Shown: positions 7,599-52,622 of the stretch, piece after piece
Layout of the letters: each line of letters opens with the position of its first letter
Numbering within the stretch: position 1 is the first letter of the stretch
From: Schmidtea polychroa
Lineage: Eukaryota
DNA: 64,000 nucleotides
Direction: 5' to 3'
NCBI GenBank assembly: GCA_044892525.1
Contig: CM097888.1
Span: 51,026,001 to 51,090,000 of the forward strand
Notes under the pieces: model-generated
Database searches by the model: none
What the model was told of the DNA's origin: nothing
The model's input: only the letters and a program-made list of their open reading frames with translations
Translations under genes and position numbers: made by a program

Positions 7599-8711
7599 TT
7601 ATCGGGGAGCATACGACAAGCCCATCCCGAATCTGTGGGCGCCTTTCTCCAGATCTTTCCCATCGATCTCTGCATTCAAGGTGATGTCAACATCTGAATA
7701 GGAATAAATATGCATTATATCAAATTGGAAAATTGGCCAATGGAAATATTGTTACTGTCGCGAGCCCGGAACACATAGCCAAGACCCAGGATGCTCTTGT
7801 TATCGATTTTGCCTTTGAATATCGAGCTATTATCGAATTGGTATTTTCCGGCAACTCCGAATTCTGTGTTCCGCGAGTTCCAGTTCCATTTTATCTGGAC
7901 TCCCACCTCGACATTCGGATTGATTCGCTGGTAAATGTGAGTCTCAACGTCCGTTTTGTTGATAACGCTACCAATCAATGACAAATCGTCTTTGTGATAA
8001 CCCAGTGAGAAAGTATGCCTCGTAATGCTCATCCGGTTCGTGTCGTAATTGATTTCAGCCCCCAACAGATAGCCCTTGTTTTCTGTGCATCTGGAAATAC
8101 AGTATCCGTTTCTTTTCAGAATTATACGAGCATATTATCATATTTAGGTAACAAATTGATTAAAGAATACATTATATTAATAACAATGAATATTTTTCAA
8201 TTACAAATATAACACAAATTGAAATGAGTAACTTACCCAATTACCAATGATGGTATTAATATAGGTTTAAGATTTGTAAAACACATGTCCATTCCGCAAT
8301 TTAAATATTTCCTTTTAAATGATGTTTGCATCTTCATTTTTTTATTTCTAATTAACTTTCAAGATAAGATATCAATATCTATATTTTTTCTCACCCACTA
8401 TCCGGGTTGAATCCTAAATCAGCTGATAATTTTGAGCCTGTTTTGATGAAATCTTCAATTGAAAAATTTACGCCTATTTCATTCTTGGTATCCCACTTTA
8501 CAGAATTTTTTAAACCATTTTCAAATTTATATTTCCATTCCAATGAACCGTTTAATTTACCAGCTTTCACGCTATTATCACCTTTAATTGTTAATTCAAC
8601 ACCTTGTGCCGATTTAGACAAATATTCGACTGATAACAAACCAAAATGAAAATTTTTATTAAACAAATCTTTAGTGGCTTTTCCCAAATCACAAAATGAT
8701 GGCGGAATCAT
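7599..8711 (-). CDS. VDAC: Voltage-dependent anion channel (mitochondrial porin), 285 aa; exons 8711-8395, 8347-8237, 8090-7756, 7693-7599
   Basis: N-terminus MIPPSFCDLGKATKDLFNKNFHFG and C-terminus DITLNAEIDGKDLEKGAHRFGMGLSYAPR*. Three GT-AG introns (47, 146, 62 nt) give an intact 858-nt frame. The intron 2 acceptor is the least certain boundary. Confidence 0.95.
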
Positions 8712-9679: not shown

Positions 9680-10330
9680 CAATGTTCTTCAATCTTTTGT
9701 CGATGGCGACACCCCATTCACTTCAAAAAAATTTCGTGACATCCCTGACAAATATTTTAGATGTAAAGTTTAATTTGCGGGTTTGAGAGAAAAAAAATAA
9801 ATACAAATTATTTTTATTTTAAGTATTTTTATTTATTTTTTCCTCCCAAACTTCAATATGATGGTTGTGCTTGATGTTTCTGGCAAACAACATCGAAACG
9901 AGGCGAGAGCGACGACAAACTAACTATCATTTATTCATCAACTGTCTGCAATCTTTCACGTTTTTTTGATTTGATATGAACCAGTGCCGAAAATCCAAGT
10001 TCACATAAGTATGATGTAGAAAACGGAAGAAATAATTTTAACGCTTTGATGCTCAACTCAGGATAATCCTTGCCTAGAGAAATCCAAAACTCTTCCAGTC
10101 CCTTTTCAAAATTAATTTGGTTGACCATGTTGTTTTTCAAATCAATAAGCTGTTCTTCTTATGTGGAAAATTTAAGACATTCGTTTATTCCAAATAGATT
10201 TTAAATTCACTGATAAAGGTTGATATTTAAGGAGAGGAAATAATTGTCGAGTGCTTTCAAAAGCATTTCCTTGGTTCGTAAAGCAAGCTCAGAAATCTTA
10301 TCCTTATTAGCGAATTTATTAACTGTGGGG
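9680..10330 (-). pseudogene. hAT (Buster/Charlie-type) transposon 3' remnant
   Basis: Dimerization-domain peptide EFWISLGKDYPELSIKALKLFLPFSTSYLCELGFSAL (ORF 9931-10140) and a terminus-like CAATGTTCTTCAATC at 9680. Confidence 0.75.
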
Positions 10331-10489
10331 AGAAAATTTAAGCCTTTTTACTTGATTTTTCTGATGATTAGTTTGCTAAAAAAGGGTCATTATGGTAAAC
10401 ATGATCAATGTCATAATTTCAAAGTCAAAAATCATCCTAGAATATCTATTAAAGTAATTAAAGTAATTAAAGTAAAATTTAATGAAAAA

Positions 10490-10790
10490 TTTGTATCTCC
10501 AAAATGGTTGCAACATGTTGTGCAACCAAGGGCCCTTGCATTATTGAATAACTCCATTAAATTGCAATTGCAATTCATCTAAATTATTAAGACAAATTTT
10601 GATCTTGAACAGCTGCTATTTGAGCTTGGTCAGCTGCTTGATTAGCTGCCATTTGATCTTGCATTACAAAAATTTAAAATAATTCATATTTAGTAATTTT
10701 AGAAATACCTTGCATCTGGCCCATTATTTGTGCCAACACCCCTCCAGGTGCCGGCACATCTGCTACCACATCTGCTACCACTAAAAACAT
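10490..10790 (-). repeat. Second copy of the intron-containing zinc-finger/PV-rich exon module found at 16.0-16.9 kb
   Basis: 10670-10780 matches 16420-16560 (VADVPAPGGVLAQIMGQMQ|gtatttc). 10497-10560 matches 16762-16820 (GCTTCCNHF vs GCITCWNHF). Confidence 0.8.
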
Positions 10791-11466
10791 CAAATTTTAT
10801 TTCGCTCAAACATTCTGGCCTCATGCAGAAGGGGAGATCGATTCTCACCCTTATGAGAACTGTAGTTTTTATTCTATTCAATCTTTGGATGTTAGAGTTA
10901 AAAACTCCCGCATCAAACGTCTTTTCTCCGGAAGGCTTCAGTAAGGCAGGGTATCGGGCAATTGTGGCCTTCATGAAACTCCGGACATTGGCTCATTCTT
11001 TAATTAACTTATTATTCCTTTATCATCAATTTATCTTAATGTATATTAATCGGAGTAGGAAGGCTCCATTTGTGACTTTTGTAGGGCTTTATAGAGTAAT
11101 ACTTTTATTATAATATAGATTAAAAGGATTATTTCAATGTAATTTTATATTAGCAATACGAACAACAAAAATATTATCAGTTAGGCGGAATCCCTACAAG
11201 GATTCCTACAAATACTCACTGCTAATAACTATTTACTTTATTAATTCTTATTAAAATTTAAAACATTATTTGGAGGATATTTATTTAAGGATACTTGGTT
11301 GTTATTAATGAGGTAAATAAAACATGTAATTTATGGGTTAAATAATTTAATTTTTGTAATTAATCCATACCAACATAATTCCATCTCAATGATTTATTAA
11401 TTATATAATAGGCCATAGAATACAAATAGATATGATATATGATCTATATAGTATAATAGTATATAT

Positions 11467-12250
11467 CAAGGGTGGGCACGCATGGGTTCAATAAGAGCCA
11501 TTTTCCGAAAATTTATTTTTTACAGAGCCACCATAGTAAAGTACATATTTTTTTTTATTTCATTAATTTGATTAAAGAGACTTAAACGCTATTAAAAATA
11601 AACAAAATAATTATTTCAAACATTAAGTAACAAACATAAAAATCCATTAATAAAAAGTAATAAAATTTCTTGAATTAACGAAGACTTTTGGTCAAATCTT
11701 TGAAATTTGGTGTATACTTTGTTAGAGCTGTTCGCAGCAATTCTGTAAGATGCTGATTGGTCAACTGTGAACGATATTTCGACTTTACGAACTTCATTGT
11801 GGAGTACAAAGATTCACAACAATATGTTGTACCAAAAATTGAAATTAGACGGCAAGCAGCTTGTTTTAAGTGTGGATATTTTACCTCTGGTACGAGTTTC
11901 CAAAATTCAACTATAGAAGTAGATTTATGGTGCATTTGCAAAGCCTGGTCCTCTTTCATATCTAATAACTCCAATTCCCCAACCGCTTTTTTAACAAGTA
12001 TTACTTCAGAAATTGGAAATCCATCTTAAATAATATCACAAATAAATGGGTTCACAAAAAATGCAAATGTAGATTTATAACTTTTCAAATCTTCAAACCT
12101 ACATTTGAAATCCACTTGCAATTCTTCCAATTTTTCACTGTATTCGTTTACTTTTTCTTCTGTAATATCAATTATATTAGCTTTTATTCGTGGAAAATGA
12201 TTAAATATATTATGAAAATACAATTGCAACAAAAATTTTTTTCTCAAAAC
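11467..12250 (-). pseudogene. hAT (GTF2IRD2/SPIN-like) transposon 3' remnant
   Basis: EFWKLVPEVKYPHLKQAACRLISIFGTTYCCESLYSTMKFVKSKYRSQL dimerization domain; terminus-like CAAGGGTGGGCA at 11467. Confidence 0.8.
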
Positions 12251-12559
12251 ATTTAGTGAAAAATTTCAAAATAAAAAATCGAATTCGATTATCAAGAATT
12301 CAATTATCAATGAGCCGCAGTTTACTCAACGAAGAGCCGCATTTGCCCACCGTTGGTATATATAATGGTTTATGCTTATGTAATGAAGGGAAAATGAATA
12401 AAGAACAAAAGAGAGATTACATAATTACGAAACTATATGATTTGATTACAGTGGTTTATAGGGTTTGAATTTTGTTAGTATAATAGACCATATAATACAA
12501 TATAGGTAAAGGGTATTCTTTGACTACATAAGTATAAATAATAATATTAATCTTTCAGA

Positions 12560-15500
12560 GTGTGTTCTCTGAAGATATGATAGCTGCTAATCACTGCAGC
12601 TGTGCATGCTTTCCTTGCCAAGCTTTTTATTTCCGCTTTTGTTAGTCCAATTTTGCTCAGTACCTGATCATTATTGTGGTCCCATGATCCAAGAGTACTT
12701 ATTATTAATGTCGATAAAACTTTATGGACTTTTCGATTTCGATTGCAATATCTGCATATTTGGTGTAATTATCATTGTTTACCTTTTCAAAGTTTTCCCT
12801 TTGCTCATATGGTACTTTGATATCTAGAATGTGGGTAAGTTTGTTTCTAGATGACCTGCTGAGTAAGTCAGGTTTAAAGGTTGTGTTAATTCCCTGAGGT
12901 GACTATTCAATGTGAGGGATTCAGCAACAGATCCCAGTACCCAGTATTTTTGCAGGACAATGGTTAAAGATATGAGCCTGTGTTTCTGGGTGGGAATGAC
13001 ATTGTCTACATAGAATATCTTTTTTTCATTTTTAGTCTATGTGGGGTGAAGTTTAGATTAAGAAGGTTATTACGTGCAATTAGTAAAAAGATATATTGGG
13101 CGTCTGTGAGAATATCCATTTTAGTAAGGTAGTCCGCTGTGCTACTATTACATATAGATTTAGCGATATGGCCCTGGCAAGTTAGTGCCATCCATTTGTC
13201 AGCATTTATAAGGCCTATTATTGAGTGAAGTTTGGAAGAAGTATTTTTGAGATTGGAATCCATAAAGTAATTTATACGTTCTTTATATTTTATTTCGAGT
13301 TGGTATTTTTCGCCAAGAAGGGCAATTTTCACATGAATTCCGTATTTACGACGTAGAAGATCAACAGATTTTCTGAATTTTGAAAAGAAGGATTTAGTAG
13401 GAAAATGTTTATAAGTAATACTATTGAGCCATAGTAATGCAGCTTCGAGGTTCCCATGACCTCTTGCTATAGTTGGTTCCGTGAGAACAAGGTTGCTGAA
13501 GCTAGTATCAGAAGAATTTAATGCGCGAGCAAGATGTATAACACTTTGGATAAGATATTCATCTATGGGTGCTGTAAGTCCCATTCCACCCATTTTTACG
13601 GAAGCATATAAGAAGTTATTATTAATTTGTAGTAGTCGATCTCCTAAAGATGTTTTGATTAATGTTCTGATTTTTTTGTCAAAAACCTTTTGTGGTATCC
13701 TGAATTTAATGATGTTATCCTTATGAGAGTCAAGAACGTTATGAAGTATTTCGCAGTTGCGAAATGGAAAAAGAAGACGCGAGTGTACAAAACTTTTGAT
13801 GGCGTTTATTTTTTGGGATGGATGAAGATGTGATTCGAATATCTTCTTAGTATCACTAAAAGGACATTCGAGTTTTTCATCTATATTATGTCTCCCTTTG
13901 TGAGTAAAGTCGACGCCCAGATATCTATACAGGTTGGAGTCATACATTTTTGGGATAAATTCGTTATACAGTTTTATTGGTGCGTAATTAAGTTTATGGT
14001 CAATGCTATAATAGCCAGATTTCGAAGGTTTAAAACGGAGGTTAGCAATTGAACCGAGACGTACAGTTTCGAGAAGAGCAGAGTTAATAGATGGGTAAGA
14101 GTCAACACACCTCCAGAATCAACACAATGTCATAGGCATATGCAAGGATGCCAACATTCATACCATTGAAGACGAACGGGTGGCTTATTAAGATATTTTT
14201 TAGTAAATAGTCAATCTAGAGACAGAAAAGAGTCATAGATAGGAGATAGCGCTGTTTTACTCCCTTTAGGATGGGAACGGAGGTAGACCTTTCTCCTTCA
14301 CAGTCAAAAATCGTGCTGACATTATTATACATGTTCTTTAATAGTTTTATAGAGTTAAATTGGAGGCCCATAATGGAGAGGGTATACCAGATTAGGTCGT
14401 GTGGCAGTGAGCCGAATGCATCAGAGATATCGAGCCATATAGTATGGAGGTCAGATTTGTTTCGGAATGATGAGTCCTTAATGAGTTGGAGGATCAAGTT
14501 ATGCTCTGCACAGCCATCAGAGACGCCAATCGTTTTTGGTTGTTAGGTATTAGATTGCCCTCTTTGATCTATCCAAGGAGTCTATTATTGACTAGTGATA
14601 AAAAAATACGATAGGCGGTATTCATAATAGATATTGGTCTCCAAGAGCTTGCTTCATGGCTACTTCACCTTTTCCTGATTTTAGGATATGTTTTGTTCTG
14701 AAGGTCTTCCAACTAGATGGGCAAGTACAGTTTCGAAGAATATTGTTGCAGATAGACAGGAGTAATTCAAAATCTGGGGATATTTTCTTCCAGTTTACAA
14801 GCGTTATAAGGTCAAAACCAGGGGCTTTATTATTTAGTTGTGTGAAGATATATTTTATCTCATCAATGTCGAAAGGATTAGAAGAGTCATTTTCATTGAA
14901 AAAGGGTATATATTTAATTAATTCGGGGTTACTAGTTACTATTTGCTTTGCAAAAATTTTAATAAAATTATTCATTGTAGGTTTTTGCAAATTCTTTTCA
15001 TTATTTAGAATTTTAGAGATCTACTCCTTGGGATTAAACTTATATCTAATTCATTTTATAATTAGTAATTAGTTAGTATTTTTTTCATTTTATTTGTTAT
15101 ATCTGATGGTTTATTTAGAAGATATTTATTTGGATTAATATTTTGATTATTTTTTTCTATCTCAGCAAGGACTGTGTCAGTCTGTTGCATCAATATTTAG
15201 GTCTGTTATAAGACTACTTATAAATAGTCGATATTTTCGCACATCATCAGTAGGCATTTTTGTATTTAATATTTTTTTAATTATTATTTTACTCTTATCC
15301 TTCATGTTTTGGATATTAGGGATTGTGAGTTTTTTATTTATTATTAGGCATTCGATCATATGACACACAAAGAAGGCTGATTCATCCGTAGTATTATATC
15401 GAGGGTATTCAAGTTGTTGGAGTGTAAAGTCAATAGGCATTACAATTTTTTGTAAGTCAAGGATAGTAGTAAGGATATTATTACCAAGTTTATGATAGTA

Positions 15501-17000
15501 GGAGTAGGAGTTTTCTATTAGAGGGTCAATAATGAGAGCTAGTTTATGACGCTTATTAAGAAAGAAAAAGAACCAATGGTCTTTATCATTATATTTTGGC
15601 ATGACAATCTCATTCCAATATGCGAATTCTATAAAGGGGAAAGATGCAAAGAAGGTTTTGAAGTTATGTTGAATAAGGGAATTTCCTATATACGGGTCTA
15701 TAAAGATAGTTGATTCCTTAATTGCGAAAGTCAAATGAAAGCCTTGATTGTGTGTTGCGACCATCATGTCGATTCTTTTTCCACATTACTTGAAAAAAGA
15801 ATATTATTCAGTATTTCCCTACCCACTACCTCATTACTGTTAGGTGAAAAAATAATTTCGTTCGTTAATAGAATATTTTTAATGTTATTATGTCTTTCCC
15901 TACCCAGTAGCTCAGTACTGTTGGGTGAAATAATATTTTCTTGCGTTAATAGAATATTTTTAAAGAAATTCCAATTCATGTTATTATTTACCTCATCTAC
16001 ACTATTATTATAATTAATAAGGTAAAGGTTATTTTTACTACTTACTATTGTACTGCCAAAAATGGTGGCACATGTACTACCACAACTGGTGGTATGCCAG
16101 GACCATGCACTAAAAAAATTATTAAAAAATTATATATAAAAATAATAAATTACTTTGTTTCACGTGGCGCTTCAGAATAGTGGTCAGTACACGCCTGGGA
16201 CAGAGATGGTGTCTGTGGTCAAGGCCTTTTTTCCATATCTGCAATGCTTGTTTGGTGTTCTCGATGACTTTCTCAGATAACTGGTCAACATAATATCCTT
16301 GAGATCATTTTGCTTTTAAATACAACCGTTTGCAATTCTGATCCAACGAATCAAATAGATTTTCATTGTATATCTCTACGAATGAACACTTTACTAAATA
16401 TTCGACGCCTGGTTGAAAAATTTAAAATAATTCATATTTAGTAATTTTAGAAATACCTTGCAGCTGGCCCATTATTTGTGCCAGCACACCTCCAGGTGCC
16501 GGCACATCTGCTGCGACATCTACTGGCACATCTGCTACCACATCTGCTGGCACATGCACTACCACAACTGGTGGTATGCCAGCACCATGCACTGAAAAAA
16601 TTATTAAAAAAATTATATATAAAATTAATAAATTACATTTATTCATGTGGCGCTTCAGCCCAGTGGCCAGTACGCGCCTAGGATAGAGATGGCACTTTAC
16701 TTTTGTATTTTTCAGAAAAGTTTCAATTACTGGCCCATGGTTCATGTTGCAATTTGTATCTCGAAAATGGTTCCAACATGTTATGCAACCATGGGCCCTT
16801 GCATTGTTAAATAATTCCATCCAATTACAGCTGAAATTCATGTGAAAAAATTAATTTTGACTAAGTCCTTTAATATTGTGAATCTTCGTCCACAGCCATT
16901 CGCGTTGAGGAATGGTGATTGTTGATTGTCGATCCTATTCGATGGGATACTGGGTATTCCTGTGTTCTATTTGGGATTCGCGATATCGTCCTCCATGGGA
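12560..17000 (-). mobile_element. Degenerate RLE-type non-LTR retrotransposon (NeSL-like): C2H2 fingers, Ulp1-like protease, RT, CCHC knuckle, restriction-like endonuclease; boundaries approximate
   Basis: Ulp1-like IVMPKYNDKDHW...IIDPL (15177-15767). RT motifs WLDISDAFGSLPH and KGVKQ (14216-14497) and YRYLG (13947 region). Knuckle CRQCHSHPETQAHIFNHC (~12950-13005). RLE motifs KPDL and ILDIKVPYE (~12800-12880). NeSL-1 of C. elegans is known to carry Ulp1 upstream of RT. Confidence 0.85.
16215..16408 (-). pseudogene. Kinesin motor-domain fragment (kinesin-12/KIF15-like) embedded in the retroelement 5' region
   Basis: VEYLVKCSFVEIYNENLFDSLD...LYLKAK*SQGYYVDQLSEKVIENTKQALQIWKKGLDHR contains the SFxEIYNE kinesin signature; one TGA at 16305-16307. 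Confidence 0.85.
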
Positions 17001-18769: not shown

Positions 18770-19135
18770 GAGATTTTCCTGTTTATATTTTTCAGCTTCA
18801 TTAAGATAGTATTCACGCCCGACTTCGTAAAACTCTAAACCTTCGCATGTATTCCGAAATTTTTGTAGATGAAATACTTCATATTCGAAACAACCGCTCT
18901 GAGTGTACTGTTAAGTGCTAGTTAGAATATTATGGTAACTCGAAATTAATTACCAAAACTATCGTTCCTATAAGAAATCCCAATCCAGCAAAAAAAGCCA
19001 TGTAGCCTTTTCGTGCCTCTGATTTGTAGCGGTCACAGAATGGAGCACTGGGAGATCCACAATCAGCCACAGTTGATGAATATTCTGTCATTGGCTCCAC
19101 TGCACTCCAGCCATGTGATTCTTTATAGAAGTATT
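18770..19135 (-). CDS. Probable exons of an unidentified host membrane-protein gene
   Basis: ESHGWSAVEPM...GYMAFFAGLGFLIGTIVL joins through a 46-nt GT-AG intron to YTQSGCFEYEVF...EAEKYKQENLP with the frame kept open; one hydrophobic segment. No family recognised. Confidence 0.4.
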
Positions 19136-20856
19136 TGATTAATAAATAGATTACAACTTGAAATACAGCTAGTGAAATTGATTTTTTTTTTAAATTTATA
19201 GTGGGAATATGACTACATGACATTCCATTGAATAAACTATTTCTATTGGATGATTATCTTCATTTAAATTTCGATTATAGACTAATTAGTAAAAAATATA
19301 ACTATATCAATACTTAAACCTTTTTAACACTGTTTTAAAATTACAAAGCAATATAATGCTATTTTCTGTTTTCATAAAAATATGTGCGCTAAAAACGGCG
19401 TTTAAATGAATTCGATGAAAGTTGGAAGAAAGCTAAAATAGCTAAAACAGATGAGAGACAATGACAAATGATTTGTATTGTCCATTGTGCATACATAGGC
19501 TAATTTAGGCAGTAATGAGAATGGGCAAAATTAAATTGTGGGCATCATTTTCAAGTATTACATAACCCAATCAGTTCATTTTAAAGTTTAACTAGCACAT
19601 AATCTTTTCATCAGTGTGGTGAAGTACATAGCCGGTGTTTTAAAAGAGATTAAAAAGAGATACATATATTTTTTTTACAAATTTGAGGTATTTTGATAGA
19701 ATCTTTATTCTATATTACAAATACGTAACAATGTCTTGAGAGGTGATGATTCAACCACAGGAAAGGACTTGAATTTAAAGTACTTTTACCTCATGAAGGT
19801 TGAACAGGGCAGTCATTACATTTACATTAAATTTGAATTCAAACATAGGTCAACTTTAGCATTGTGGAGTATGGAAAGTTTTTGTCTTAGGTATAGATTT
19901 TGGCAATTCAACTTGTTAATAGTAACCAAGTTAAATGTTTTCTGTAAAGGTTTGAAAAATTGATGCCACAAAAGTCTTAATTATGGAATTTTCACGCGAA
20001 AATGGTAAAAAAAGGTTTTGATAAAATGAAAACTTTTTATATTGAAGAATTGATGATTATGCTAGAATGATTTGTTAGAGTAGGTAACATATGACTATAC
20101 CAATCAACTTAAATAACTCCGTTTTATTGCCGAACACCTAAATTTGGAGTAATGAAAAATTATTTATGGAATGTACCCTAAATTTTAAACAAAATCTCAA
20201 GATTTGTTTAGCTGATTATCAAAATCAAAAGTACAACCGAAGATAACAGATTTTCTAATAAAATATCTTTGGNNNNNNNNNNNNNNNNNNNNNNNNNNNN
20301 NNNNNNNNNNNNNNNNNNNNNNNNNNNNNNNNNNNNNNNNNNNNNNNNNNNNNNNNNNNNNNNNNNNNNNNNNNNNNNNNNNNNNNNNNNNNNNNNNNNN
20401 NNNNNNNNNNNNNNNNNNNNNNNNNNNNNNNNNNNNNNNNNNNNNNNNNNNNNNNNNNNNNNNNNNNNNNNNNNNAAAAGAAGTGCCGAAAATCATCAAA
20501 ATCAAAAACATCGATATTTTTACTGATTCATAGCCAAGCTTTTTAAATGTTACCAACCAGATCTACAATTGTTTTAATGATTTTTGTATATATGATTTTT
20601 TTTAACTAAATTGGGTCTTTATTTAATAAAAATCTGATAGAAGTCGGAAACTTTTTATACCATATTACAATTTATGGATAGCATGAAAGGTATTTCCCAT
20701 TTTTACTAAAGGATACTTATTTATTTTTAAACGTTTTTTTCAGAAACGTATTTATTGTGGAGGTGACAGTATGTTATGTTATGTATGAACCATATTTTAA
20801 TGCATTAGTCTATATATAACAAGGTTCATTAAAAACAGGTATGCAATTTTGTCCGT

Positions 20857-27669: not shown

Positions 27670-28891
27670 CAGGGTCTGCAATCCCGTCTTATTTTTCAAT
27701 CACAGGATTTCAGGATTACATTATCGAGATCCCGGGATTGGAATTGGACTATTATCATAGTTTAAATTACTTAATAAAGATGAAAACATAAATAAAAATT
27801 GGTTTAATATTAATATTTATTTATACAAAACAAATAAGAAATAATACATGATGAAAATAAAATAATATCCTTTGTTTCATGTGTTTCTTGAAATAGTCCA
27901 AACGTCCAACGTCGCAACGTTCAAACGACTTCTTATTTTTGTTACAAATTGGCCTGCCGAAGAAAATGCTCGTTCAGACTCTACACTAGTAGGCTTTATC
28001 GTCATTAAAAAGGAGTATGTTTTTTCCAGCTAGTCACCACGTATCCCACTGTTTTCAAACAAAGACATTTCTTTTTGAATTTTTGATGACAGTGACTCAA
28101 ATATAATTGGCTGCATTGGCTCATATACCTCTTTAATAACTTTTTTCTAGTTCTTCTGCTACACTCAATGGATTTTGTTCACAAATTTATTCGGTTATTT
28201 AATAAGGTTTCGAATTAACTTCAAGTGCTATTTCAGTTGAAATAGAAGATCCAGTTAAATGTGCGGCGATAAATACAGTGGGATTCGAAGGATTTTGTCT
28301 ATTAAGCAACTCCGTTATTAATGCACAGCATCTATTTGAAGAAGGAACTGAGAAAAACTTTTCCTGGGATATTGCTTATACCACTGTGTAAGTACTGCAG
28401 TAACCCACTTAGATTTGTGCGGCGTTCTTCCATATGAAGAATGAGGGCTTCACATAATTTTTTACTTATAGCACTATTTGCATTTCTAAGCTTCCTTATC
28501 ATAAAATATTTGGCTATATCTGCTGTAAACAGATTGGTATCTCGGCGATAGAGGTCTTCAACAGTTTCTTTTACTAGTACAATAGATGTAATTACATCAA
28601 ATAACAATTGGATATCATCGCGAGATAAATCTAGTGATGTATCTGTATTTTTATGCAATCTTTCAGTAAATAGAAACGTTCCACCATTAGCAAAAGACTG
28701 CTCCACATAGTCTTGCAGTCTTTTAATAAGACAATATCCTTACCAAATTCTGTTCGAACATATTGTTGTAATAAATCATTCTTTGTTGAATATTTTAATG
28801 ATTTTTCGCACCTTTTTATCAGTGGACCAATACCTTATCAAATTACCGGAAGTTTGTTTCCTCTGAAAATACGTCATTTCAAACAACCAAT
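27670..28891 (-). pseudogene. hAT transposon remnant, interrupted at its upper end by the Gypsy insertion
   Basis: LLKDCKTMWSSLLLMVERF (~28700) and IKPTSVESERAFSSAGQFVTKIRSRL (~27950); terminus CAGGGTCTGCAATCCCG at 27670. Confidence 0.85.
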
Positions 28892-29131
28892 ATTGTTATT
28901 AGGAGGTTCATCCTGTAAAACATTAAAATCAGTTTTTGTTTCCATAAATTTTATTTCAATAAATATCAAAATCAAATTATAACTTCTTTAATCTTTCTTA
29001 TTTAAACAAATTTTCTACGAAGATATTTTTAATTAAAATATCTTCTTATTTTGTTTTTTTAAAAATTAATCTAAACTTTAATTTTTAAAATTTTCAATTT
29101 AAAAATTTCTTCATCATAAAACTTCCTCATA

Positions 29132-29142
29132 TCCCCCTTCTT
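29132..29142 (-). promoter_or_regulatory. Polypurine tract
   Basis: AAGAAGGGGGA immediately precedes the 3' LTR. Confidence 0.9.
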
Positions 29143-32100
29143 AAGAAATCTTTAAGTTTTTCCACATTTCTTTCGATCCTTTTTCCATCTTCATTTCTTA
29201 AGATGTATCGTCTGTCATGCACTTTCTTTATCACTTTGTACGGACCTTCATACCTGTCCTGGCCTTTGTGGCGTGTTTCTACTTTTACTAATACTTCTCC
29301 TACATTGAATTTTCTCCTTGTTTGTTCTTCTAGTTCTTCCTTTATCGGTATTTCTTTGGACCCGTACCATTTTTCCTTGCTAATCTTTTTTCCAAAAACT
29401 ATCTCTGCTGGGCTTTTCCCTGTCGTTTTTTGTTTGGTTGCATTTAAAGTGAATTCGACTTCTGGTAATATCTCTGCCCAATCCGTCTTCTTTCTATCCT
29501 GTAAAGTAGCATTTATCAAATCCCGTATTGTCCTGAATTGTCTTTCTATCTGACCGTTTGTTTGTGATGGTATGGACTCGAAAAACATAATTTAATATCT
29601 AGCATCTTTGTGAATTCTCTCATCATTCCTGATTCAAACGCCTTTCCGCAATCAACTCTTATCTCCTTTGGGCATCCAAATCTTAAAATCCACTTTTCTA
29701 AAATCGTTTTCTTTATTGTTTCTTCGCCTTGTTTTGTTATCGCTGTCAAGACTTGATACTTACTATACTGATCTATTATGCTTAATATATACTTCTTACG
29801 TCCTTTTGTTTCTGCCAACGGTCCACATATATCCACGAATATAATTTCGAACATTTCCTTCGAATCTTGCCTTTTTACTTGTTCTTTCGTTGTTATTGTT
29901 AAAGCCTTGGTTTTTTGACAAATCTCACAACTTCGAACAATCTCCTGAATCTTACTCCACAGGGGTTTTCCAACATATCTATCTTTCATATAATCGGCTA
30001 TCTTCTCGACTCCAGCATGACACAATAGTCTATGTATTTCCTTTGTTGTTTCTTGTAACTCATTTTCAGGTATCATCGTTTTCTTTCGTACTTCTTCTAC
30101 AATTCCATGTTGGATGTTGCTTCTTCCCTCTTCTCTGATCGAGTCTAGTAATCTTGTTTTTATCTTTCCTTTCTTAGCTTCTTCGTGGGCCATTTGACAT
30201 TGAACACACGTGTCACATTTAGTTCTCGACACCATGTCTGCATTTTGGTGATTAATACCCTTTCTGTATTCTACTCTTATATCTAAACTGCTCAAATAAT
30301 TGATCCATGTTTGGAATTGTGAAGTAATCGACTTCTTGGTTGTCATCATAAACGTGATTGCCTTGTGGTCTGTCCTGAGCGTGAATCTTCTTTCGTAGAG
30401 ATAGTGCTTAAAATGAATGCAAAAATAATATACCGCCAATAGTTCCTTTCTTGTAATACAATATCCTTTCTCGTGGCTCGTCATCGAGTGTGATCCATAC
30501 GCAATTACTCTTTCCTTTCCATCTTTATCTCTTTGTGAAAGTACTGCTCCAATGGTATCGAAACTAGCGTCGGTATCTAAAATGAACTCCTTTTCAGATC
30601 CGGAAAACATAAGATTGGCGCCGTCGTGAGTGCTAATTTCAATCCCTCAAACACGCTATTCGTTCCTTCACTCCATTCTAATTTTTTGTTACTTGGTCCG
30701 CTACATAATTGTTCTAACATCCTTGCCTTCTTTGCATAATCACTGATGAATCTTCTATAATAATTGCAAATACCTAAAAAGCTTCGGAGTTTCTTTACGC
30801 AATTAGGCTTCCCAAAGTTCTGTATGGCCTGAATTTTAGATGGATCTGTCTGTACTCCTTCCTTGCTGATTATGTGTCCTAAGAATCTGATTTCTTCCTT
30901 TATTATTTGGCATTTTTCTGGATTAATCCTTATGCCTGCTTCCTCAATCGCCTTTAACACTTCTCCGAGTATTGTATAGTGTTTCTCTTTACTGCTGGAA
31001 TAAATCAAGATGTCGTCCAAATACACCATTGCTCCCTTTATTTTGCCTAATACTTTTGTCATCATTTCTTGGAACGTACCGTGGTGCTGCTGCAATTCCA
31101 AACGGCATTCTGTTGAAACAATATTGTCCGTTCTTTGTTGAGAAAGCTGTTTTCTCCTGTGATTCTTCTTCTAGTTCCACTTGGTAATATGCATTACCTA
31201 GATCGATTGAGCTGAAAAAGACGGATCCTCCTAACAAATCTAACATCTCGTCTATGTTTGGCATTGGAAATGCCTGCCTCTCTGTTACCGCGTTCAGCTG
31301 TCTAAAGTCCAAGCATAGTCTAATATCCTTTTTCTCTTTTTTCCATACACATATTAGCGGTGTATTCCATGGAGAGTTACATTTCCGTATAATTCCATTT
31401 TCGTACAAATTTTGTATTGCTTCTTCAATCTTTGATTCCAAATTTAGTGGCTGGCGATATGATTTTATGTTTATCGGCTCACCTCTTGTAACTATCTTGT
31501 GTTTTACCAAATGTGTGCGACCCACATCCCATTTATCTGCCATAAACACGTTTCCACTGTTTGTTATAATTTCCTTTAATTTGCTATCTTCATTGATCTT
31601 TAACTGTTCCAACGCTCGTATCAATCGTTCTTCATCCTTTATTTTTCTGCCAAATTTTGCTTCAATGTTACAAATATAGTTCTTGTCTTTTTCACTAGCC
31701 TCGATATCTTTAATTTTTAACAGTCTAAATCCAAATGTTTCTTGTAATTCGATTCCTCCAATCACGTCTGGTGTCACTTTCTCCGCCACAATGAATATAA
31801 CTTCCTTCGAAACATTTCCAATGGTTACTTGCACCTTCGTTTTTCATATTGTCTCGATCGTACTCTCGTTTGCGCAACGTAACTTATCGTCACTTTTCGT
31901 CAATTGTTGTCCTCGTAGCTTGTTGAAACAGTTCACACTCATTACATTGATTCTTGCCCCAGTGTCTAATAAACAGTCGAAATTTTCCCCATTCATCCTT
32001 ACTGTTATACTAGGCCTTCCTTGCATTCTGTTATACAAAATTTCAACAACCTGCTCCGTTTCAATGGTTCCAATTCTTTCCACTTCCTCTTCAAACATTT

Positions 32101-32190
32101 CTCTCTTTAGGAACCTGTATACTTTCTCGCTTACCCTTCCAACATTCTCCCACTTTTCTGCCCCTTGAGGATATCCCATCAAATTTTCTG

Positions 32191-33237
32191 TTAGAATATG
32201 GCTCCAACCAACTCCTCTACTGGTGAAGCCCTGTTGTTTGGGTACGTCTTCCTAAAATTATCTTCATTTGTCTCTACACACGATTCCCTTTCTTCTTCTT
32301 CCTCGATACCATTTATCCGACTGTATCTGTTTCCCGTGAATCTTTGTCTCTCCGTCGCTCTCCCGTACCTCATCTTTGTATAACACTCCTCGGATCTATG
32401 ACCATTTCTGCTACATCTTTCACAACGTATTTCCTGACACAATCTTCTTAAATGACCTTCTTTCCCACACCCAAAACATCTTGGAGCTTTTTTATCTGGA
32501 CAGTTTCTACTTATATGTCCGCTTCTATGACATGTCCAGCATTCTATTTTACCTTTTATTGGACAATCAATTTTCGTGTGTCCTATTTTGTGGCATAACC
32601 AGCATTCTGGCATTTCTCTTCGGATACTTTCTTCTCTCTGTTCTTTCTTCTTGTATTGTACTCTTCCCTGTGGTTCCTGATAGACCACTCTGGCGTAACT
32701 TTTCATACTGTTTATCTGCTCTCTTTGCTTGTCTACTTTGTCCATCAGAGTTAGTGTTTCCTTTATTTCTTCTGTGCTTTTTATCTTCCGTAGTATCACT
32801 TCTTTCTCAACTTCTTTATTCTCCGCACATACTATTAACATCCTTGCTGTTAATTTCTCTTTGGTAAATTCTTTATTTTCGAACAACCTATCAACAAGGT
32901 CCTCCACCTTTTTAAAATACGTTTCTATTTCTTCACCCTTCCGCTTGTAATTCAACAAGTTTTGTAGATCCTTTAAAACATCTCTTTCACGATCGAATGA
33001 CAATCGCAACCTAGCCTGGAATCCTTCGGCTTTTTTCAGTGTTTTGGCGTACACTTCCAGGAGATCCTCATCAATCATGCAAGATGTTAATCTTTCCGGG
33101 TCTTTCTTCTGCGTGATTCCCTTGGCGTCGAAATAAATTTCGCATCTTTTAATGAACTTTTCCAAATCGTCCCCTTGGCAGAATACCTTTGGTAGCAATC
33201 TTTCGGTGATTGCGTCCGTGTTTACCGCTGCCACCAT
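32191..33237 (-). CDS. gag: Gag with four CCHC zinc knuckles (in-frame upstream ATG also present inside the LTR)
   Basis: CWLCHKIGHTKIDC, CWTCHRSGHISRNC, CFGCGKEGHLRRLC, CERCSRNGHRSEEC; uninterrupted ORF. Confidence 0.9.
   Translation of the reverse strand: MVAAVNTDAITERLLPKVFCQGDDLEKFIKRCEIYFDAKGITQKKDPERLTSCMIDEDLLEVYAKTLKKAEGFQARLRLSFDRERDVLKDLQNLLNYKRKGEEIETYFKKVEDLVDRLFENKEFTKEKLTARMLIVCAENKEVEKEVILRKIKSTEEIKETLTLMDKVDKQREQINSMKSYARVVYQEPQGRVQYKKKEQREESIRREMPECWLCHKIGHTKIDCPIKGKIECWTCHRSGHISRNCPDKKAPRCFGCGKEGHLRRLCQEIRCERCSRNGHRSEECYTKMRYGRATERQRFTGNRYSRINGIEEEEERESCVETNEDNFRKTYPNNRASPVEELVGAIF
32200..32242 (-). promoter_or_regulatory. Putative -1 ribosomal frameshift signal (gag to pol)
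   Basis: Heptamer C CCA AAC in the gag frame (32236-32242), a 5-nt spacer, then stem-loop GGCUUCACCA...UGGUUGGAGCC (32200-32230). The -1 frame is open from here into the protease. Confidence 0.7.
33224..33236 (-). promoter_or_regulatory. Primer-binding site, probably for tRNA-Leu
   Basis: TGGTGGCAGCGGT directly abuts the 5' LTR and is complementary to the ...ACCGCUGCCACCA end of metazoan tRNA-Leu(AAG/TAG) as recalled. Confidence 0.75.
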
Positions 33238-33745
33238 ATTAGGAGGTTCATCCTGTAAAACATTAAAATCAGTTTTTGTTTCCATAAATTTTATTTCAAT
33301 AAATATCAAAATCAAATTATAACTTCTTTAATCTTTCTTATTTAAACAAATTTTCTACGAAGATATTTTTAATTAAAATATCTTCTTATTTTGTTTTTTT
33401 AAAAATTAATCTAAACTTTAATTTTTAAAATTTTCAATTTAAAAATTTCTTCATCATAAAACTTCATAATTGTAATATACGAAACTTCAGCTCATCAAAC
33501 AGGTCACTATATGGGATTAGTTATGGTAATATCACCAATTTTCTTATTTCTCGTATGCTCGTATGCCATCAAGATTGGAAGTTACATTAATGCAAATACC
33601 AGATTCACTTTATACCAAGATGTGGCATTCAAGAAATATATTATATCTATTAGTTAATATTAGTTTCAAATTTTTATAATCATCTTTTTTCAGCTCACTT
33701 TCCAGAGCCTCATTGACTAAATCGAATCTCCTTTTGAGTGACATA

Positions 33746-45357: not shown

Positions 45358-46200
45358 TTAAAAACTTGATTTCTGTAATTCATTATTATAAAATCTACCC
45401 AATATTTCTTCATTATTTATATCGATGATACTATATGTAATTGGAACTGTATGATGTATTTTATTTATAATAAAAATTTCATTTGTCCATTTCGCTGTGA
45501 ATCCTTTTTCAAATTTATTTTTATATTTAAATATTCTTACTCTATCACCAATTTTAAGTTTAGATTGAGAGAATTTCTCTTGATCTAAACTTGGTTTTAC
45601 AAACTCTTGTTTTAGAGCCAAAACTTATTTTGGATCTAAAACGGGGTTTGTGGAAGCATTTAAAGGTGTTTCTTTAATAGAGCTATGTACATCATTATTA
45701 TTTTCATTTACCATCTTTTGCAATAATTCATTGTTCCATTTTTGTTTTCCAATAGCAGTAAAATATTTCCACATTTTATTTTTTAACGTTCTATTTAATC
45801 TTTCAACTACGACTGCTTTTCCTTCATTTTCTGTGTAATATAATTTAATATCATTTTCTTGCAAAGATTTTGTAAAAACTTTGTTATAAAATTCTGTTCC
45901 TTTATCACACCATAAATATTTTGGAATTCTTTGATATTCTTCAAATATATTTTCAAATGCTTCTGTAATAGAATATCCTGTTTTATTTTCTAAACATCTT
46001 GCAAAAGCAAATCTTGTATATAAATTTATTACAGTTAAAATTATTTTATATTTTTCGGGGTCTGATGATTTGGTTGGCATAAAGACTAAATCAGCAGAGC
46101 AAGTATGATCTTTTTCATAAACTTGAACTTTTAGATATTTTTTATTTTTTCTAAATTCATGGTGTAATTCTTCAGCATATTTTATTAGTGATTCTGTTAG
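45358..46200 (-). pseudogene. Retroviral-like (rve) integrase of Polinton type
   Basis: YAEELHHEFRK...SADLVFM, LWCDKGTEFYN, KAVVVERLNRTLK and IGDRVRI...FEKGFTAKWTNEIF. Confidence 0.9.
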
Positions 46201-46202
46201 GA

Positions 46203-46740
46203 TTAATAAACTTTTATTAGTAAAACTTGTTTTACTAATAAAAAAGTCAGTCTTGGATGCATTCTCGAGGTGTTTTCAGTGTCTGCTTGTTCAATAATCT
46301 TTTTATTAGCAACATCTTTTGCCATCCTTGATAAACTAGCACCTATAGCGATCATGGGAGTCGGATTGTGTCCTGCATCCATGAAAATTTTACCCTTCAT
46401 TGCTAATTTAACTAGAGCTCTTTGAATCTTTTCTTGAGTTGATGGATTTTGTATATTATTTAAATCATGAATTAAATTAACATCAGCAACATGTCTATCT
46501 CTAAGAGTTTTTGAATTGTAAGCAATGTCATGTTTTAAAGCAGCTCTGTCAATTCTATTTATTGGTTCCTCTCCTTGTTTAGGATTGTCATTTTCATCAA
46601 GTCTAATATCTAATCGTGTTCCAGGTCCAGTATAGTTGTGTTTAAATAAATGTCTTTCACCTGGGTATTTTTCAGTAGTAAAGGGTTTCAATAATGTTGA
46701 TGTTAATTTTGAAGATTGTAAATCACCACCAATTTGTTTT
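46203..46740 (-). pseudogene. Parvovirus-type phospholipase A2 (PLA2X-like) domain, probably originally fused to the integrase
   Basis: NYTGPGTRL...PINRIDRAALKHDIAY...RHVAD. Confidence 0.85.
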
Positions 46741-46883
46741 TCTCAAAAGCAAATCTACTTAAAGGATCAAGATCTAACCATGGAATATTTTTTGATGATG
46801 AAATTATTTCACCTTCAAAATTATCTGATAGAATATTATTAATATTATTTAATTGAGTTAAATTCTCTCTCTCTAAAACAAGT

Positions 46884-46988
46884 TTAGATCGAGAGAGGTG
46901 TTATTTTATTTTTAAGATGACTGGCTTTATGGTGTGTTGTAACATCACAACAACAAGTTTCACATCTCCAACAACGTTTAGTAGTCAT
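46884..46988 (-). CDS. 34-aa Cys/His-rich micro-ORF (zinc-finger-like)
   Basis: MTTKRCWRCETCCCDVTTHHKASHLKNKITPLSI*; A-rich start context, and its stop overlaps a hairpin. Confidence 0.5.
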   Translation of the reverse strand: MTTKRCWRCETCCCDVTTHHKASHLKNKITPLSI

Positions 46989-47057
46989 TTTTAAAAAGTT
47001 AAAATTTAATTATAATAATTTTAGTTTTATTACTAAAACAAGTTTTAGTAATAAAAG

Positions 47058-48294
47058 TTAATCTCCTCTAACATTCTCAATTATTGAAATCTTTCTACCA
47101 TATAACTTCATTTCTAATGTATATATTTTTGCTTTAAAATTAGAATCCTTTGTCAACATTATTTATAGCTAATCTATCATCTTGATCTGAAACATTTATA
47201 CAGAATATAGAATATAAATTTTTAAAATCTTCTAAACTTAATTGTGGTTTTATTTTGAAGTCTTGGCATGTTTGAATATAATTTTCATATGGGAATATAT
47301 TTTCATTGTTTTGTGGATTCCATTCTATTTACTGGATAATAAGAATTATTCAATTGAATTTGAATTGATTTTATATTATCATCTCCAATCTTTTGAATAA
47401 ACAAGTTATATTTTTGAAAGGATGGATTTAATTCTTTGAATCCAATTAAAATATATCTTGGACGATCTGCTAAATTTATAGAGTATGATGAACCTTTTCT
47501 CATGTCAAATACACTACAAATTCTATTTAAATAATTAACATTTATAGACTTGTTGGAGTTTAATCTTTCAAGGAGTTTAATTTCAGCATGCGGCCTTAAT
47601 GTCCATTCGGGTATATGTATTTCAATTGTTGTTAATTTTAATTTGGCTTTTGTATCTGCAGCTAAATAGAATAATACTTTATCATCTTCTATTCTATTAC
47701 AAAGTAATTTTATAAAAACATTATGAAGTATACGATTATAGTTTTGAAGGAAACCAAATAAATATTTTAATTCGAAATAACCCTCAAATTTTTTAGACTT
47801 GTAAAGTTTAACACGTTTATAATAACCATAATTTGTATCTAAACCATCTTTATCTGTATCACCTTTGTTAACATCGGGGATCAAACCTGTTTTATAATCA
47901 AAACCAGTCAAAACAAAATTTAACATTGAATTGATATATTTTCAATTTCTGATGATCCTAATTTTAATCTCATGCTGTTGAATAAATTTGGAAAGAAATT
48001 ATTTTCTAGGGTAATAACTTTATTTGGTTCAATCTCTAATTCAATTTTGTAATATAATTTTTCATTACAAATATCTATAAGGTTTGATGTTTGAAGAGAT
48101 TGAAAATCTATATCACCTGAACGATTTAAATTTGAAATGAAACCAGAAGTTGGACAAATTTTAAGTACATCATTTTTCTTGATTTCATGAATAAACTGTT
48201 TATCATAATCAAGATTTAATTTATTTTTTTCTGAAATCTCGAGATTTATATTGTTCATTTTTATAATAAAAATTTCAATTTTTATATTTTTCAA
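47058..48294 (-). pseudogene. Polinton major capsid protein (frameshifted)
   Basis: ENNFFPNLFNSMRLKLGSSEIE, LKYLFGFLQNYNRIL and a C-terminal piece PQLSLEDFKNLYSIFCINVSDQ; final stop at 47058-47060. Confidence 0.85.
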
Positions 48295-51619: not shown

Positions 51620-52622
51620 ATGGATATCAAATCTTCTGTTGATTTTGAAACTAGACCACATGCTTTAATTGTTATAGGCATGGCTGGAAGTGGTAAAACT
51701 TCATTTGTCAATGCTTTGAAAACGTATTTAAGTCAAAATGATTTACCAGCTTATACTATTAATATGGATCCAGCTGTTCATTTTTTGCCTTATGATCCTA
51801 ACATTGGTATATTAAATTTTAAATGGGTATTATAAATTTAATTGATATTTAGATATCCGTGATGTAATTAATTATAAAGAAGTTATGAAAGAGTACAACT
51901 TAGGTCCTAATGGTGGTATTTTAACGTCTTTAAATCTTTTCTCAACAAAAATGAATGACGTTGTTCAGTTAATTAACAATAACTCAGGTGCAACTAATCA
52001 TTGTATCATTGATACACCCGGTCAAATAGAAGTATTTAAATGGTCAGCTTCTGGTAAAATAATTACTGAAACTCTGTCATCATCCTTCCCAACAACAATT
52101 GTTTATGTAATCGATAGTACACGTTCAACTAATCCACGGACATTTATTTCCAATATGGCTTATGCTTCAGCGGTAGCAACTGAATATGATTTACCATTTG
52201 TAATGGTCATGAACAAGACTGACATAATTGACTGCAAATATCTTGAGGATTGGATGGCTGACGTGACGAAATTTATCGACGATATGGAAGAACAAGATCT
52301 CGGTTACATGAAGACAATGACGAGGCAGATGGCATTTGTGTTGGAGAAGTTTTATTCTGTAATTCCCAAATGCGGAGTCTCATCGCAAACTGGCCAAGGA
52401 ATGGCTGAATTTGTGGAACTCTTAAAGGCTGCTAGAGAACAGTTTCTCACTGAATATCTTCATGAAATTGTACAGGCTAAAAATTCTGATGTCGAGGGGC
52501 CGGCGGAAAATGGATTTATCGATCTGTTGACTGATAGGATGAAGAAATCAGAAGAGGAACAAATGAAAACAGAAAGCGAGAATGAGGAGACAATTTCAGA
52601 AAATGGAAATGAAACAGATTAA
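51620..52622 (+). CDS. GPN1: GPN-loop GTPase 1, 318 aa; exons 51620-51806 and 51853-52622
   Basis: GMAGSGKT, NMDPAV, DIRD across a 46-nt intron, LGPNGGILTSLNLF, DTPGQIEVFKWSASG and NKTD. Confidence 0.95.

Follow-up and report, generated by a model that had tools for sequence, protein, structure and literature searches.

The 64,000-nucleotide (nt) stretch of the Schmidtea polychroa genome analyzed here (contig CM097888.1, positions 51,026,001 to 51,090,000 of the forward strand; hereafter the window) contains a retrotransposon without long terminal repeats (LTRs) that encodes an R2-like reverse transcriptase (RT) and a restriction-like endonuclease (RLE), and that lies directly downstream, on the minus strand, of small exon-like modules separated by short GT..AG stretches. 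The original prediction for this sequence had taken the modules for the N-terminal zinc-finger region of the element itself, split by spliceosomal introns. The locus is instead probably, although by no means certainly, a dead, 5′-truncated NeSL/Utopia-like copy that sits in an array of host exon fragments, itself in decay. In this reconstruction, a host-type array of small exon modules with 44–48-nt GT..AG introns would have occupied what are now positions 16841-16066 and 10783-10477 of the window; the element (∼16060 to at least 12547, minus strand) would have come by target-primed reverse transcription, with 5′ truncation as usual, and would then have decayed by indels and stops. The block bearing the element would have interrupted one exon of the array within a 12-nt repeat, and the apparent introns in a retrotransposon would be those of the neighboring array. 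All coordinates below are those of the window, and all features lie on its minus strand unless another contig or strand is given.

The element and its relatives

The second open reading frame (ORF2) of the element extends over positions 12547-15767 at 34% G+C and encodes a Ulp1 protease, an RT, a CCHC knuckle and an RLE, in that order. The catalytic domain of the protease (Ulp1/Peptidase_C48, Pfam PF02902) was detected at 15270-15608 with an E-value of 4.8e-5, above the curated cut-off. The bounds of the RT domain (13914-14672) were mapped from the RVT_1 match in a relative, P0002 (RVT_1 was strong in relatives and weak in one piece of the window sequence); those of the CCHC knuckle and RLE region (12564-13001), which aligns to relatives in two frames, were mapped from the same protein. 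The gene is broken: it was matched from residue 6 to the C-terminus of its nearest relatives, over ∼750–920 residues at ∼33% identity, with the coverage spread over all three frames by ∼5 frameshifts and interrupted by 5–6 in-frame stops. Excess DNA at the frame changes amounted to -1, -1, +10, +1, and -10 nt, and short introns were ruled out as the cause of these breaks because the excess was at most 10 nt at every one of them. In the ∼300 nt 3′ of ORF2 (12248-12546), possibly a 3′ untranslated region, neither a poly(A) tail nor a defined element end was found.

This decay bears directly on the idea of a domesticated chimera, one of the options offered in the original prediction, in which the module exons would be spliced onto a retained Ulp1-RT-RLE coding region to form a host gene. 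The only point in its favor was the gene-like exon/intron layout upstream. For this copy it is contradicted by the ∼10 disabling changes in the RT gene counted above, and further by a stop in one of the module exons (E3, described below), by a frame offset at the junction of modules and element, and by the failure to find any homologue of the module ORF protein among 5.8 billion proteins, so that a domesticated gene is scarcely credible.

A search with the longest intact piece of ORF2, a 313-residue piece covering the RT thumb, gave 70 matches among 1.84 billion representative proteins, the best of them 33% identical; a partial relative, P0005, was 47% identical. No second copy of the element was found among these representatives, in which the nearest protein was 33% identical (51% over a short stretch), and the RT-thumb piece had no close relative in JGI metagenome contigs and, taken alone, no match among solved structures. 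The full-length relatives, of 1042–1135 amino acids, contain Ulp1 (detected in five of six), RT, a CCHC knuckle, and a D..D.K.P.D endonuclease motif, with the C..C..H..C and D..D.K.P.D columns nearly invariant among them, and their best solved-structure matches were R2 proteins (E-value 4e-55). The element is thus a distant member of a known, Ulp1-bearing R2-like kind, and the family is rare.

Architecture was compared in the contigs of six distinct relatives (L002-L007). In all six, ORF1 was intronless, at 300–733 codons, and ORF2 was likewise uninterrupted; the same intron in several relatives, which an intron-bearing lineage would lead one to look for, was not found. The statement that R2/NeSL-type elements bear fingers upstream was borne out, in that five of the six had two mutually alignable C2H2-like fingers before Ulp1, all within the final 90 residues of ORF1, at about -80 and at -45 to -33 residues from the ORF1 end, both uninterrupted. 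In every one of the six, ORF1 and the Ulp1-RT-CCHC-RLE region shared one frame, broken by a single TGA (L002:2122, L003:2996, L004:1585, L005:896, L006:2201, and L007:169) that lay 62–65 codons before the Ulp1 catalytic-His motif and was followed by CT in five relatives and by CA in one. A C after UGA favors readthrough, and the conserved in-frame TGA has the look of a programmed readthrough site that separates a finger-bearing ORF1 from the enzyme polyprotein. As the chief by-product of the analysis, this conserved and mostly TGA-CT context points to readthrough that may set the ratio of the two products.

Two of these contigs held further features. In the closest relative (L004:1-1587), ORF1 lacked fingers and had an N/S-rich tail, and a second Ulp1 (Pfam E-value 9e-11) lay upstream of the TGA, giving two protease domains in tandem. 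In L002, ORF2 is followed after ∼700 nt by a tRNA-Lys(CTT) gene of the same strand (L002:6266-6340), a possible target gene, as tRNA-specific NeSL-related families exist (PMC4640811).

The TGA also provided the main reason for assigning the sequence just upstream of ORF2 in the window. This stretch (15764-16062; it holds E5 of the exon series below) comprises ∼100 codons at 29% G+C, without a Cys, and its frame ends in a TGA ∼62 codons before the Ulp1 catalytic-His motif. Because this TGA sits at the conserved stop position of the family, E5 is probably the tail of the element's own ORF1, and the resemblance of its G+C content to the 34% of ORF2 agrees with this assignment. An in-frame 81-nt (27-codon) tandem duplication, 85% identical, was also seen in the tail at 15800-15961. 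The Ulp1 frame in the window differs from the ORF1-tail frame. The last of the proposed introns had been said to splice the modules into the ORF that leads to Ulp1, RT, and RLE; these domains and the CCHC knuckle do lie downstream, but the frame reached by that splice stops at the TGA and Ulp1 is in another one. The ORF1s of the relatives found no match in the window by tblastn, and in comparison with L003, ∼2.5 kb of ORF1 is missing, including the family's own two zinc fingers. The copy is dead and 5′-truncated.

The module array and its probable short introns

Upstream of ORF2, four minus-strand GT..AG stretches had been reported, and all were present: stretch 1 at 16636-16592, stretch 2 at 16456-16409, stretch 3 at 16153-16110, and stretch 4 at 16045-16002, of 45, 48, 44, and 44 nt, respectively. 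Their G+C contents of 7, 17, 5, and 18% compare with 39–56% in E1–E4, where E1–E5 denote the pieces between the four stretches. Stretches 1–3 had the features of short-class introns, namely GT..AG ends, a length of 44–48 nt, AT-richness, and a run of T ahead of the AG. A strict short-intron pattern (GTA[AT][GT]T, a T-run, and [CT]AG within 42–56 nt) had 11 matches on the minus strand of the 64 kb, three of which were stretches 1–3, within ∼530 nt; ∼0.1 matches would be expected in a region of that size. Stretches 1 and 3, however, are paralogous, differing by two substitutions and one indel within a 148-nt duplication that is 88% identical, and therefore count as one observation. The attribution of the stretches to a host size class was matched by two host genes in the window, GPN1 (GPN-loop GTPase 1), with a 46-nt intron at 51807-51852 (plus strand), and VDAC, with introns of 47 nt (8394-8348) and 146 nt. 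Stretches 1–3 are thus credible spliceosomal introns, now or formerly, and would belong to the module array, not to the element.

Stretch 4 differs from the other three. Its ends (GT..AG) and its length are right, but it has no T-run and fails the strict pattern; it lies inside the element-bearing block, and the frame of the ORF1 tail reads open through it without splicing. In all likelihood it is a GT..AG that arose by chance in the ORF1 tail, and its GTAAGT may be a mutated unit of the 12-nt repeat.

All four stretches had been said to preserve frame. Each single removal does leave an open frame over its junction, but the five-exon model as a whole has an in-frame stop in E3. Removal of both 44-nt stretches shifts the reading stepwise into the frame that ends beside Ulp1, and after splicing no stop occurs between the second finger-like stretch and the TGA. 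The frame of E3 is fixed only by its homology to kinesin, and no homologue of a module protein spans the junctions.

The exon pieces form repeated modules. In module 1, E1 (16637-16841) begins with an ATG and ends with the first finger-like stretch, and E2 (16457-16591) is a low-complexity exon of 56% G+C with about four 12-nt repeat units. In module 2, E3 (16154-16408) consists of a 5′ kinesin-motor fragment fused to the second finger-like stretch, and its tail is homologous to the tail of E1. Further pieces, with no RT beside them, are found ∼5 kb away. These include a third module, in which an E1-like exon start (10477-10578) copies the first 34 codons of E1 at 71% identity and ends there. 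The 139-residue ORF covering E1, stretch 1, and E2 had no homologue among the 5.8 billion proteins searched. The 5′ part of E3, in contrast to its 3′ part, which alone gave no kinesin match among solved structures, matched kinesin motors in solved structures (kinesin-8 and KIF15 motors, E-value 7e-6) and, weakly, the Pfam Kinesin family (E-value 4e-4, model positions 123–147 of 327). No retrotransposon ORF1 could use such a piece of kinesin motor as a functional part. Stretch 2 has its first 41 nt repeated at ∼10709-10668, and the copy ceases to match 7 nt short of the AG; hence the kinesin exon was apparently joined at the DNA level, with the breakpoint inside the intron. To judge from these homologies, the module array is a patchwork of a recently duplicated finger-like exon end and intron, plus a kinesin exon fragment.

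The finger-like stretches themselves consist of the ends of E1 and E3 together with the first residues of the exon that follows, and had been described as C2H2 fingers completed only by splicing. After splicing, both copies do have H-x4-H, with a spacing of 11 to the first His, but the C-x2-C position reads C..Y in one copy and H..C in the other, leaving one Cys in each, so that neither has the two cysteines of a C2H2 finger. The two copies are recent duplicates in which 6 of the 18 residues, a supposed ligand among them, are no longer the same. Profile searches lent the fingers no support. Pfam found no match in the spliced finger-like peptides at E-values up to 10, although it also misses the clear fingers of relatives; in the unspliced module exons it found no zinc finger at E-values up to 1 and only the weak kinesin match. 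A profile built from the relatives' fingers scored ∼1 bit on every frame of the upstream 1.4 kb and on both spliced models, which join the exons of the original prediction as they stand, from after the E3 stop. On this evidence from the sequence, the module family cannot be called a zinc-finger family.

These results also bear on the possibility of an intron-retaining RLE lineage, in which the modules would be the element's own ORF1, with acquired host exons and spliceosomal introns kept in the copies; were this true, unspliced RNA would serve as the template and spliced RNA as the message. The intron-like character of stretches 1–3 and the open spliced frame down to the TGA fit such a lineage, as does the presence in NeSL-like relatives of two C2H2-like fingers just upstream of Ulp1, roughly where the finger-like stretches lie. 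Set against this are the intronless ORF1s and uninterrupted fingers of the relatives, the failure of the family finger profile to match the window, the recent duplication of the window "fingers" and their divergence at a supposed ligand, the kinesin fragment, the break in base composition at the junction, the occurrence of modules without an adjacent RT, and the lack of introns in ORF2. With no positive support for the lineage, it is very improbable, and the claim that the N-terminal finger region of this element is split by introns is not supported, on the same grounds of relatives, profile, composition, and modules found apart from an RT. The remaining option in the original prediction, a 5′-truncated element inserted in frame into a modular zinc-finger family, came closest to the reading favored here: a truncated copy in a modular array is retained, but the frames are offset and the modules do not make up a zinc-finger family.

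An apparently interrupted exon and competing histories

Module 2 remains similar to module 1 over its finger-like tail, over stretch 3, and for 14 codons into a second exon of the E2 type. Homology to module 1 is clear up to the end of the left part of this exon (16066-16109, the start of E4) and fades in the following junction zone (16036-16065), where similarity to the 12-nt repeats of E2 falls from 9/12 to 6/12 per unit. About 5.3 kb downstream and in the same orientation lies a sequence (10783-10710) that complements the left part in what it contains: it supplies the last 12-nt repeats and the exon end, with 83% protein identity to the end of E2. It is followed, as E2 is, by the 5′ part of a stretch-2-like intron, which extends to ∼10668. 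The left end of the intervening 5.3-kb block falls within 16065-16036, inside the 12-nt repeat. Within the block lie the ORF1 tail, ORF2, the ∼300 nt that follow ORF2, a C-terminal hAT transposase fragment (11675-12247; Pfam Dimer_Tnp_hAT, E-value 7e-10), and a further ∼900 nt up to the right exon part (10784-11674) in which neither a domain nor terminal inverted repeats were found. Base composition changes at the junction as well, from 39–56% G+C in E1–E4 to the 29% of the ORF1 tail and 34% of ORF2. The simplest reading is that one E2-type exon was interrupted by the 5.3-kb element-bearing block, and the chance of equal complementarity between two unrelated truncated copies of the module, estimated at ∼4%, is suggestive of this, not decisive.

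The damage to the array is not limited to this exon, as the module array has three breaks, namely the one stop in E3, the one exon split by the block, and the third module cut short. Together with the broken ORF2, they suggest that nothing at the locus is functional now.

Several observations weigh against the insertion of a truncated copy into an exon of the array. The breakpoints are fuzzy and set in a 12-nt repeat. Neither a target-site duplication nor a poly(A) tail was found at the element, nor was a second copy from this genome found that would define its ends. Target-primed reverse transcription leads one to expect the 3′ end of an element against its target, and the hAT fragment and the ∼900 nt that separate the 3′ end of ORF2 from the right exon half are therefore a weakness of this interpretation. 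As to the ORF1 tail, its local alignment to the relatives' tails did not score above shuffled controls (the relatives' ORF1 tails also fail to match one another by BLAST), and it lacks the second finger that five of the six relatives hold in their last 45 residues. Finally, splicing at stretch 4 does yield an open frame. Terminal inverted repeats that might bound a hAT or other DNA transposon around the block were also sought, and only AT-rich chance pairs were found.

A rival reading is a patchwork without insertion, in which modules, kinesin fragment, element, and hAT fragments were joined by unrelated rearrangements or fragment capture and the split exon is coincidental. The array was itself already chimeric: a finger-like tail is joined to a kinesin exon fragment, and stretch 2 contains a joint 7 nt ahead of its AG. 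In addition, hAT-derived and further sequence occupies the place where the 3′ junction of the element would be expected. A second, different hAT C-terminal dimerization fragment was found at 9931-10140, just downstream of the cut-off third module, so that a hAT fragment comes after each module break; the nearness of these two fragments and of the truncated module also counts in favor of such a history. Yet the two parts of the E2-type exon complement each other, share one orientation, and join within one and the same short repeat, where base composition shifts as well. A history of unrelated joins is accordingly regarded as unlikely, though it deserves to be kept in view.

Another history to be weighed is a 5′ transduction or chimeric retrocopy, in which a source copy of the element would have resided in a host gene of the module type, and an unspliced read-in transcript with the exons and introns upstream would have been reverse-transcribed along with the element and inserted as one. 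The modules do immediately precede the element on the strand that encodes it, an unbroken frame can be traced over the junction, and short introns can escape splicing. However, the missing right half of the interrupted exon is present downstream of the block, where the start of the third module follows it, and all three of the good introns would need to have stayed unspliced. A joint retrocopy is distinctly improbable on these counts.

Known retroelements and the surrounding sequence

The nematode NeSL families and Utopia-1_TSP of Trichinella carry a Ulp1 domain (Kojima and Jurka, 2015, PMC4640811). Their order, as in NeSL-1 and Utopia-1_TSP, is zinc fingers, Ulp1-like cysteine protease, RT, zinc knuckle, and RLE, and it is followed by the window ORF2 and by the six relatives, except that the window copy, unlike NeSL-1 and Utopia, is 5′-truncated and without fingers. 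An RLE-type (R2-like) RT, a Ulp1 domain N-terminal to it, and a C-terminal CCHC knuckle and RLE were thus all found, and C2H2 fingers upstream of the protease were not found in the window; placement of the element in the NeSL clade is suggested by this architecture only. NeSL targets the SL1 gene and Utopia the U2 small nuclear RNA gene. The window copy adjoins no such gene, and neither tRNAs nor Rfam families at gathering score were found in the 64-kb window, so that no small-RNA target was found. R2 elements share with this family the RT, the C-terminal CCHC knuckle and RLE, and N-terminal fingers, but have no Ulp1 and insert in 28S ribosomal DNA.

Penelope-like elements are the known intron-retaining retroelements. 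What the present locus shares with them is only the idea of introns within a retroelement copy: the introns here lie outside the part homologous to the family, none occurs in ORF2 or in the relatives, and the endonuclease is of the RLE type. The copy resembles a dead-on-arrival long interspersed nuclear element (LINE) lodged in or next to a gene fragment: it is 5′-truncated, small indels and stops have disabled it, and the part that was reverse-transcribed is free of introns. It differs from an ordinary LINE insertion in its unclean 3′ junction, with a hAT fragment between the element and the presumed target. In spliced L1 copies, splicing removes sequence from the new copies (PMC5860796).

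The locus is therefore largely ordinary, its apparent retrotransposon introns probably stemming from juxtaposition, and it carries a caution for interpretations made from sequence alone, as an AT-rich genome with 45-nt introns easily offers GT..AG pairs that join adjacent open frames. The R2-like elements with a Ulp1 domain described to date come from nematodes (PMC4640811), and occurrence of the family in the present host, a divergent metazoan, would widen its known distribution.

The window as a whole is AT-rich (∼20–38% G+C) and crowded with transposon remains. VDAC (7715-8711) and GPN1 (51640-52622, plus strand) are both ordinary host genes, and the GPN1 protein is at most 62% identical to any database protein and ∼55% identical to that of any named animal, with the best named matches scattered among insects, crustaceans, and other groups; sampling of the host lineage is accordingly poor. 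Beside assembly gaps, three consecutive ORFs at 45625-47926 encode an integrase core domain (45625-46080), a domain resembling the phospholipase A2 of parvovirus VP1 (46203-46691), and a capsid-like double jelly roll (47303-47926), and look like the remnant of a Polinton/Maverick-like or other virus-like element. A short ORF at 18930-19223 weakly matched the arthropod-specific "Deltamethrin resistance" family (E-value 3e-4, below the cut-off), and a Tc1/mariner-type DDE_3 transposase ORF was found on the plus strand at 53233-54090 (Pfam E-value 3e-17). A Gypsy-type LTR retrotransposon at 28332-33315, in several ORF pieces, contains a gag with a CCHC knuckle, RT, RNase H, and integrase, and coincides with strong negative GC and AT skew.

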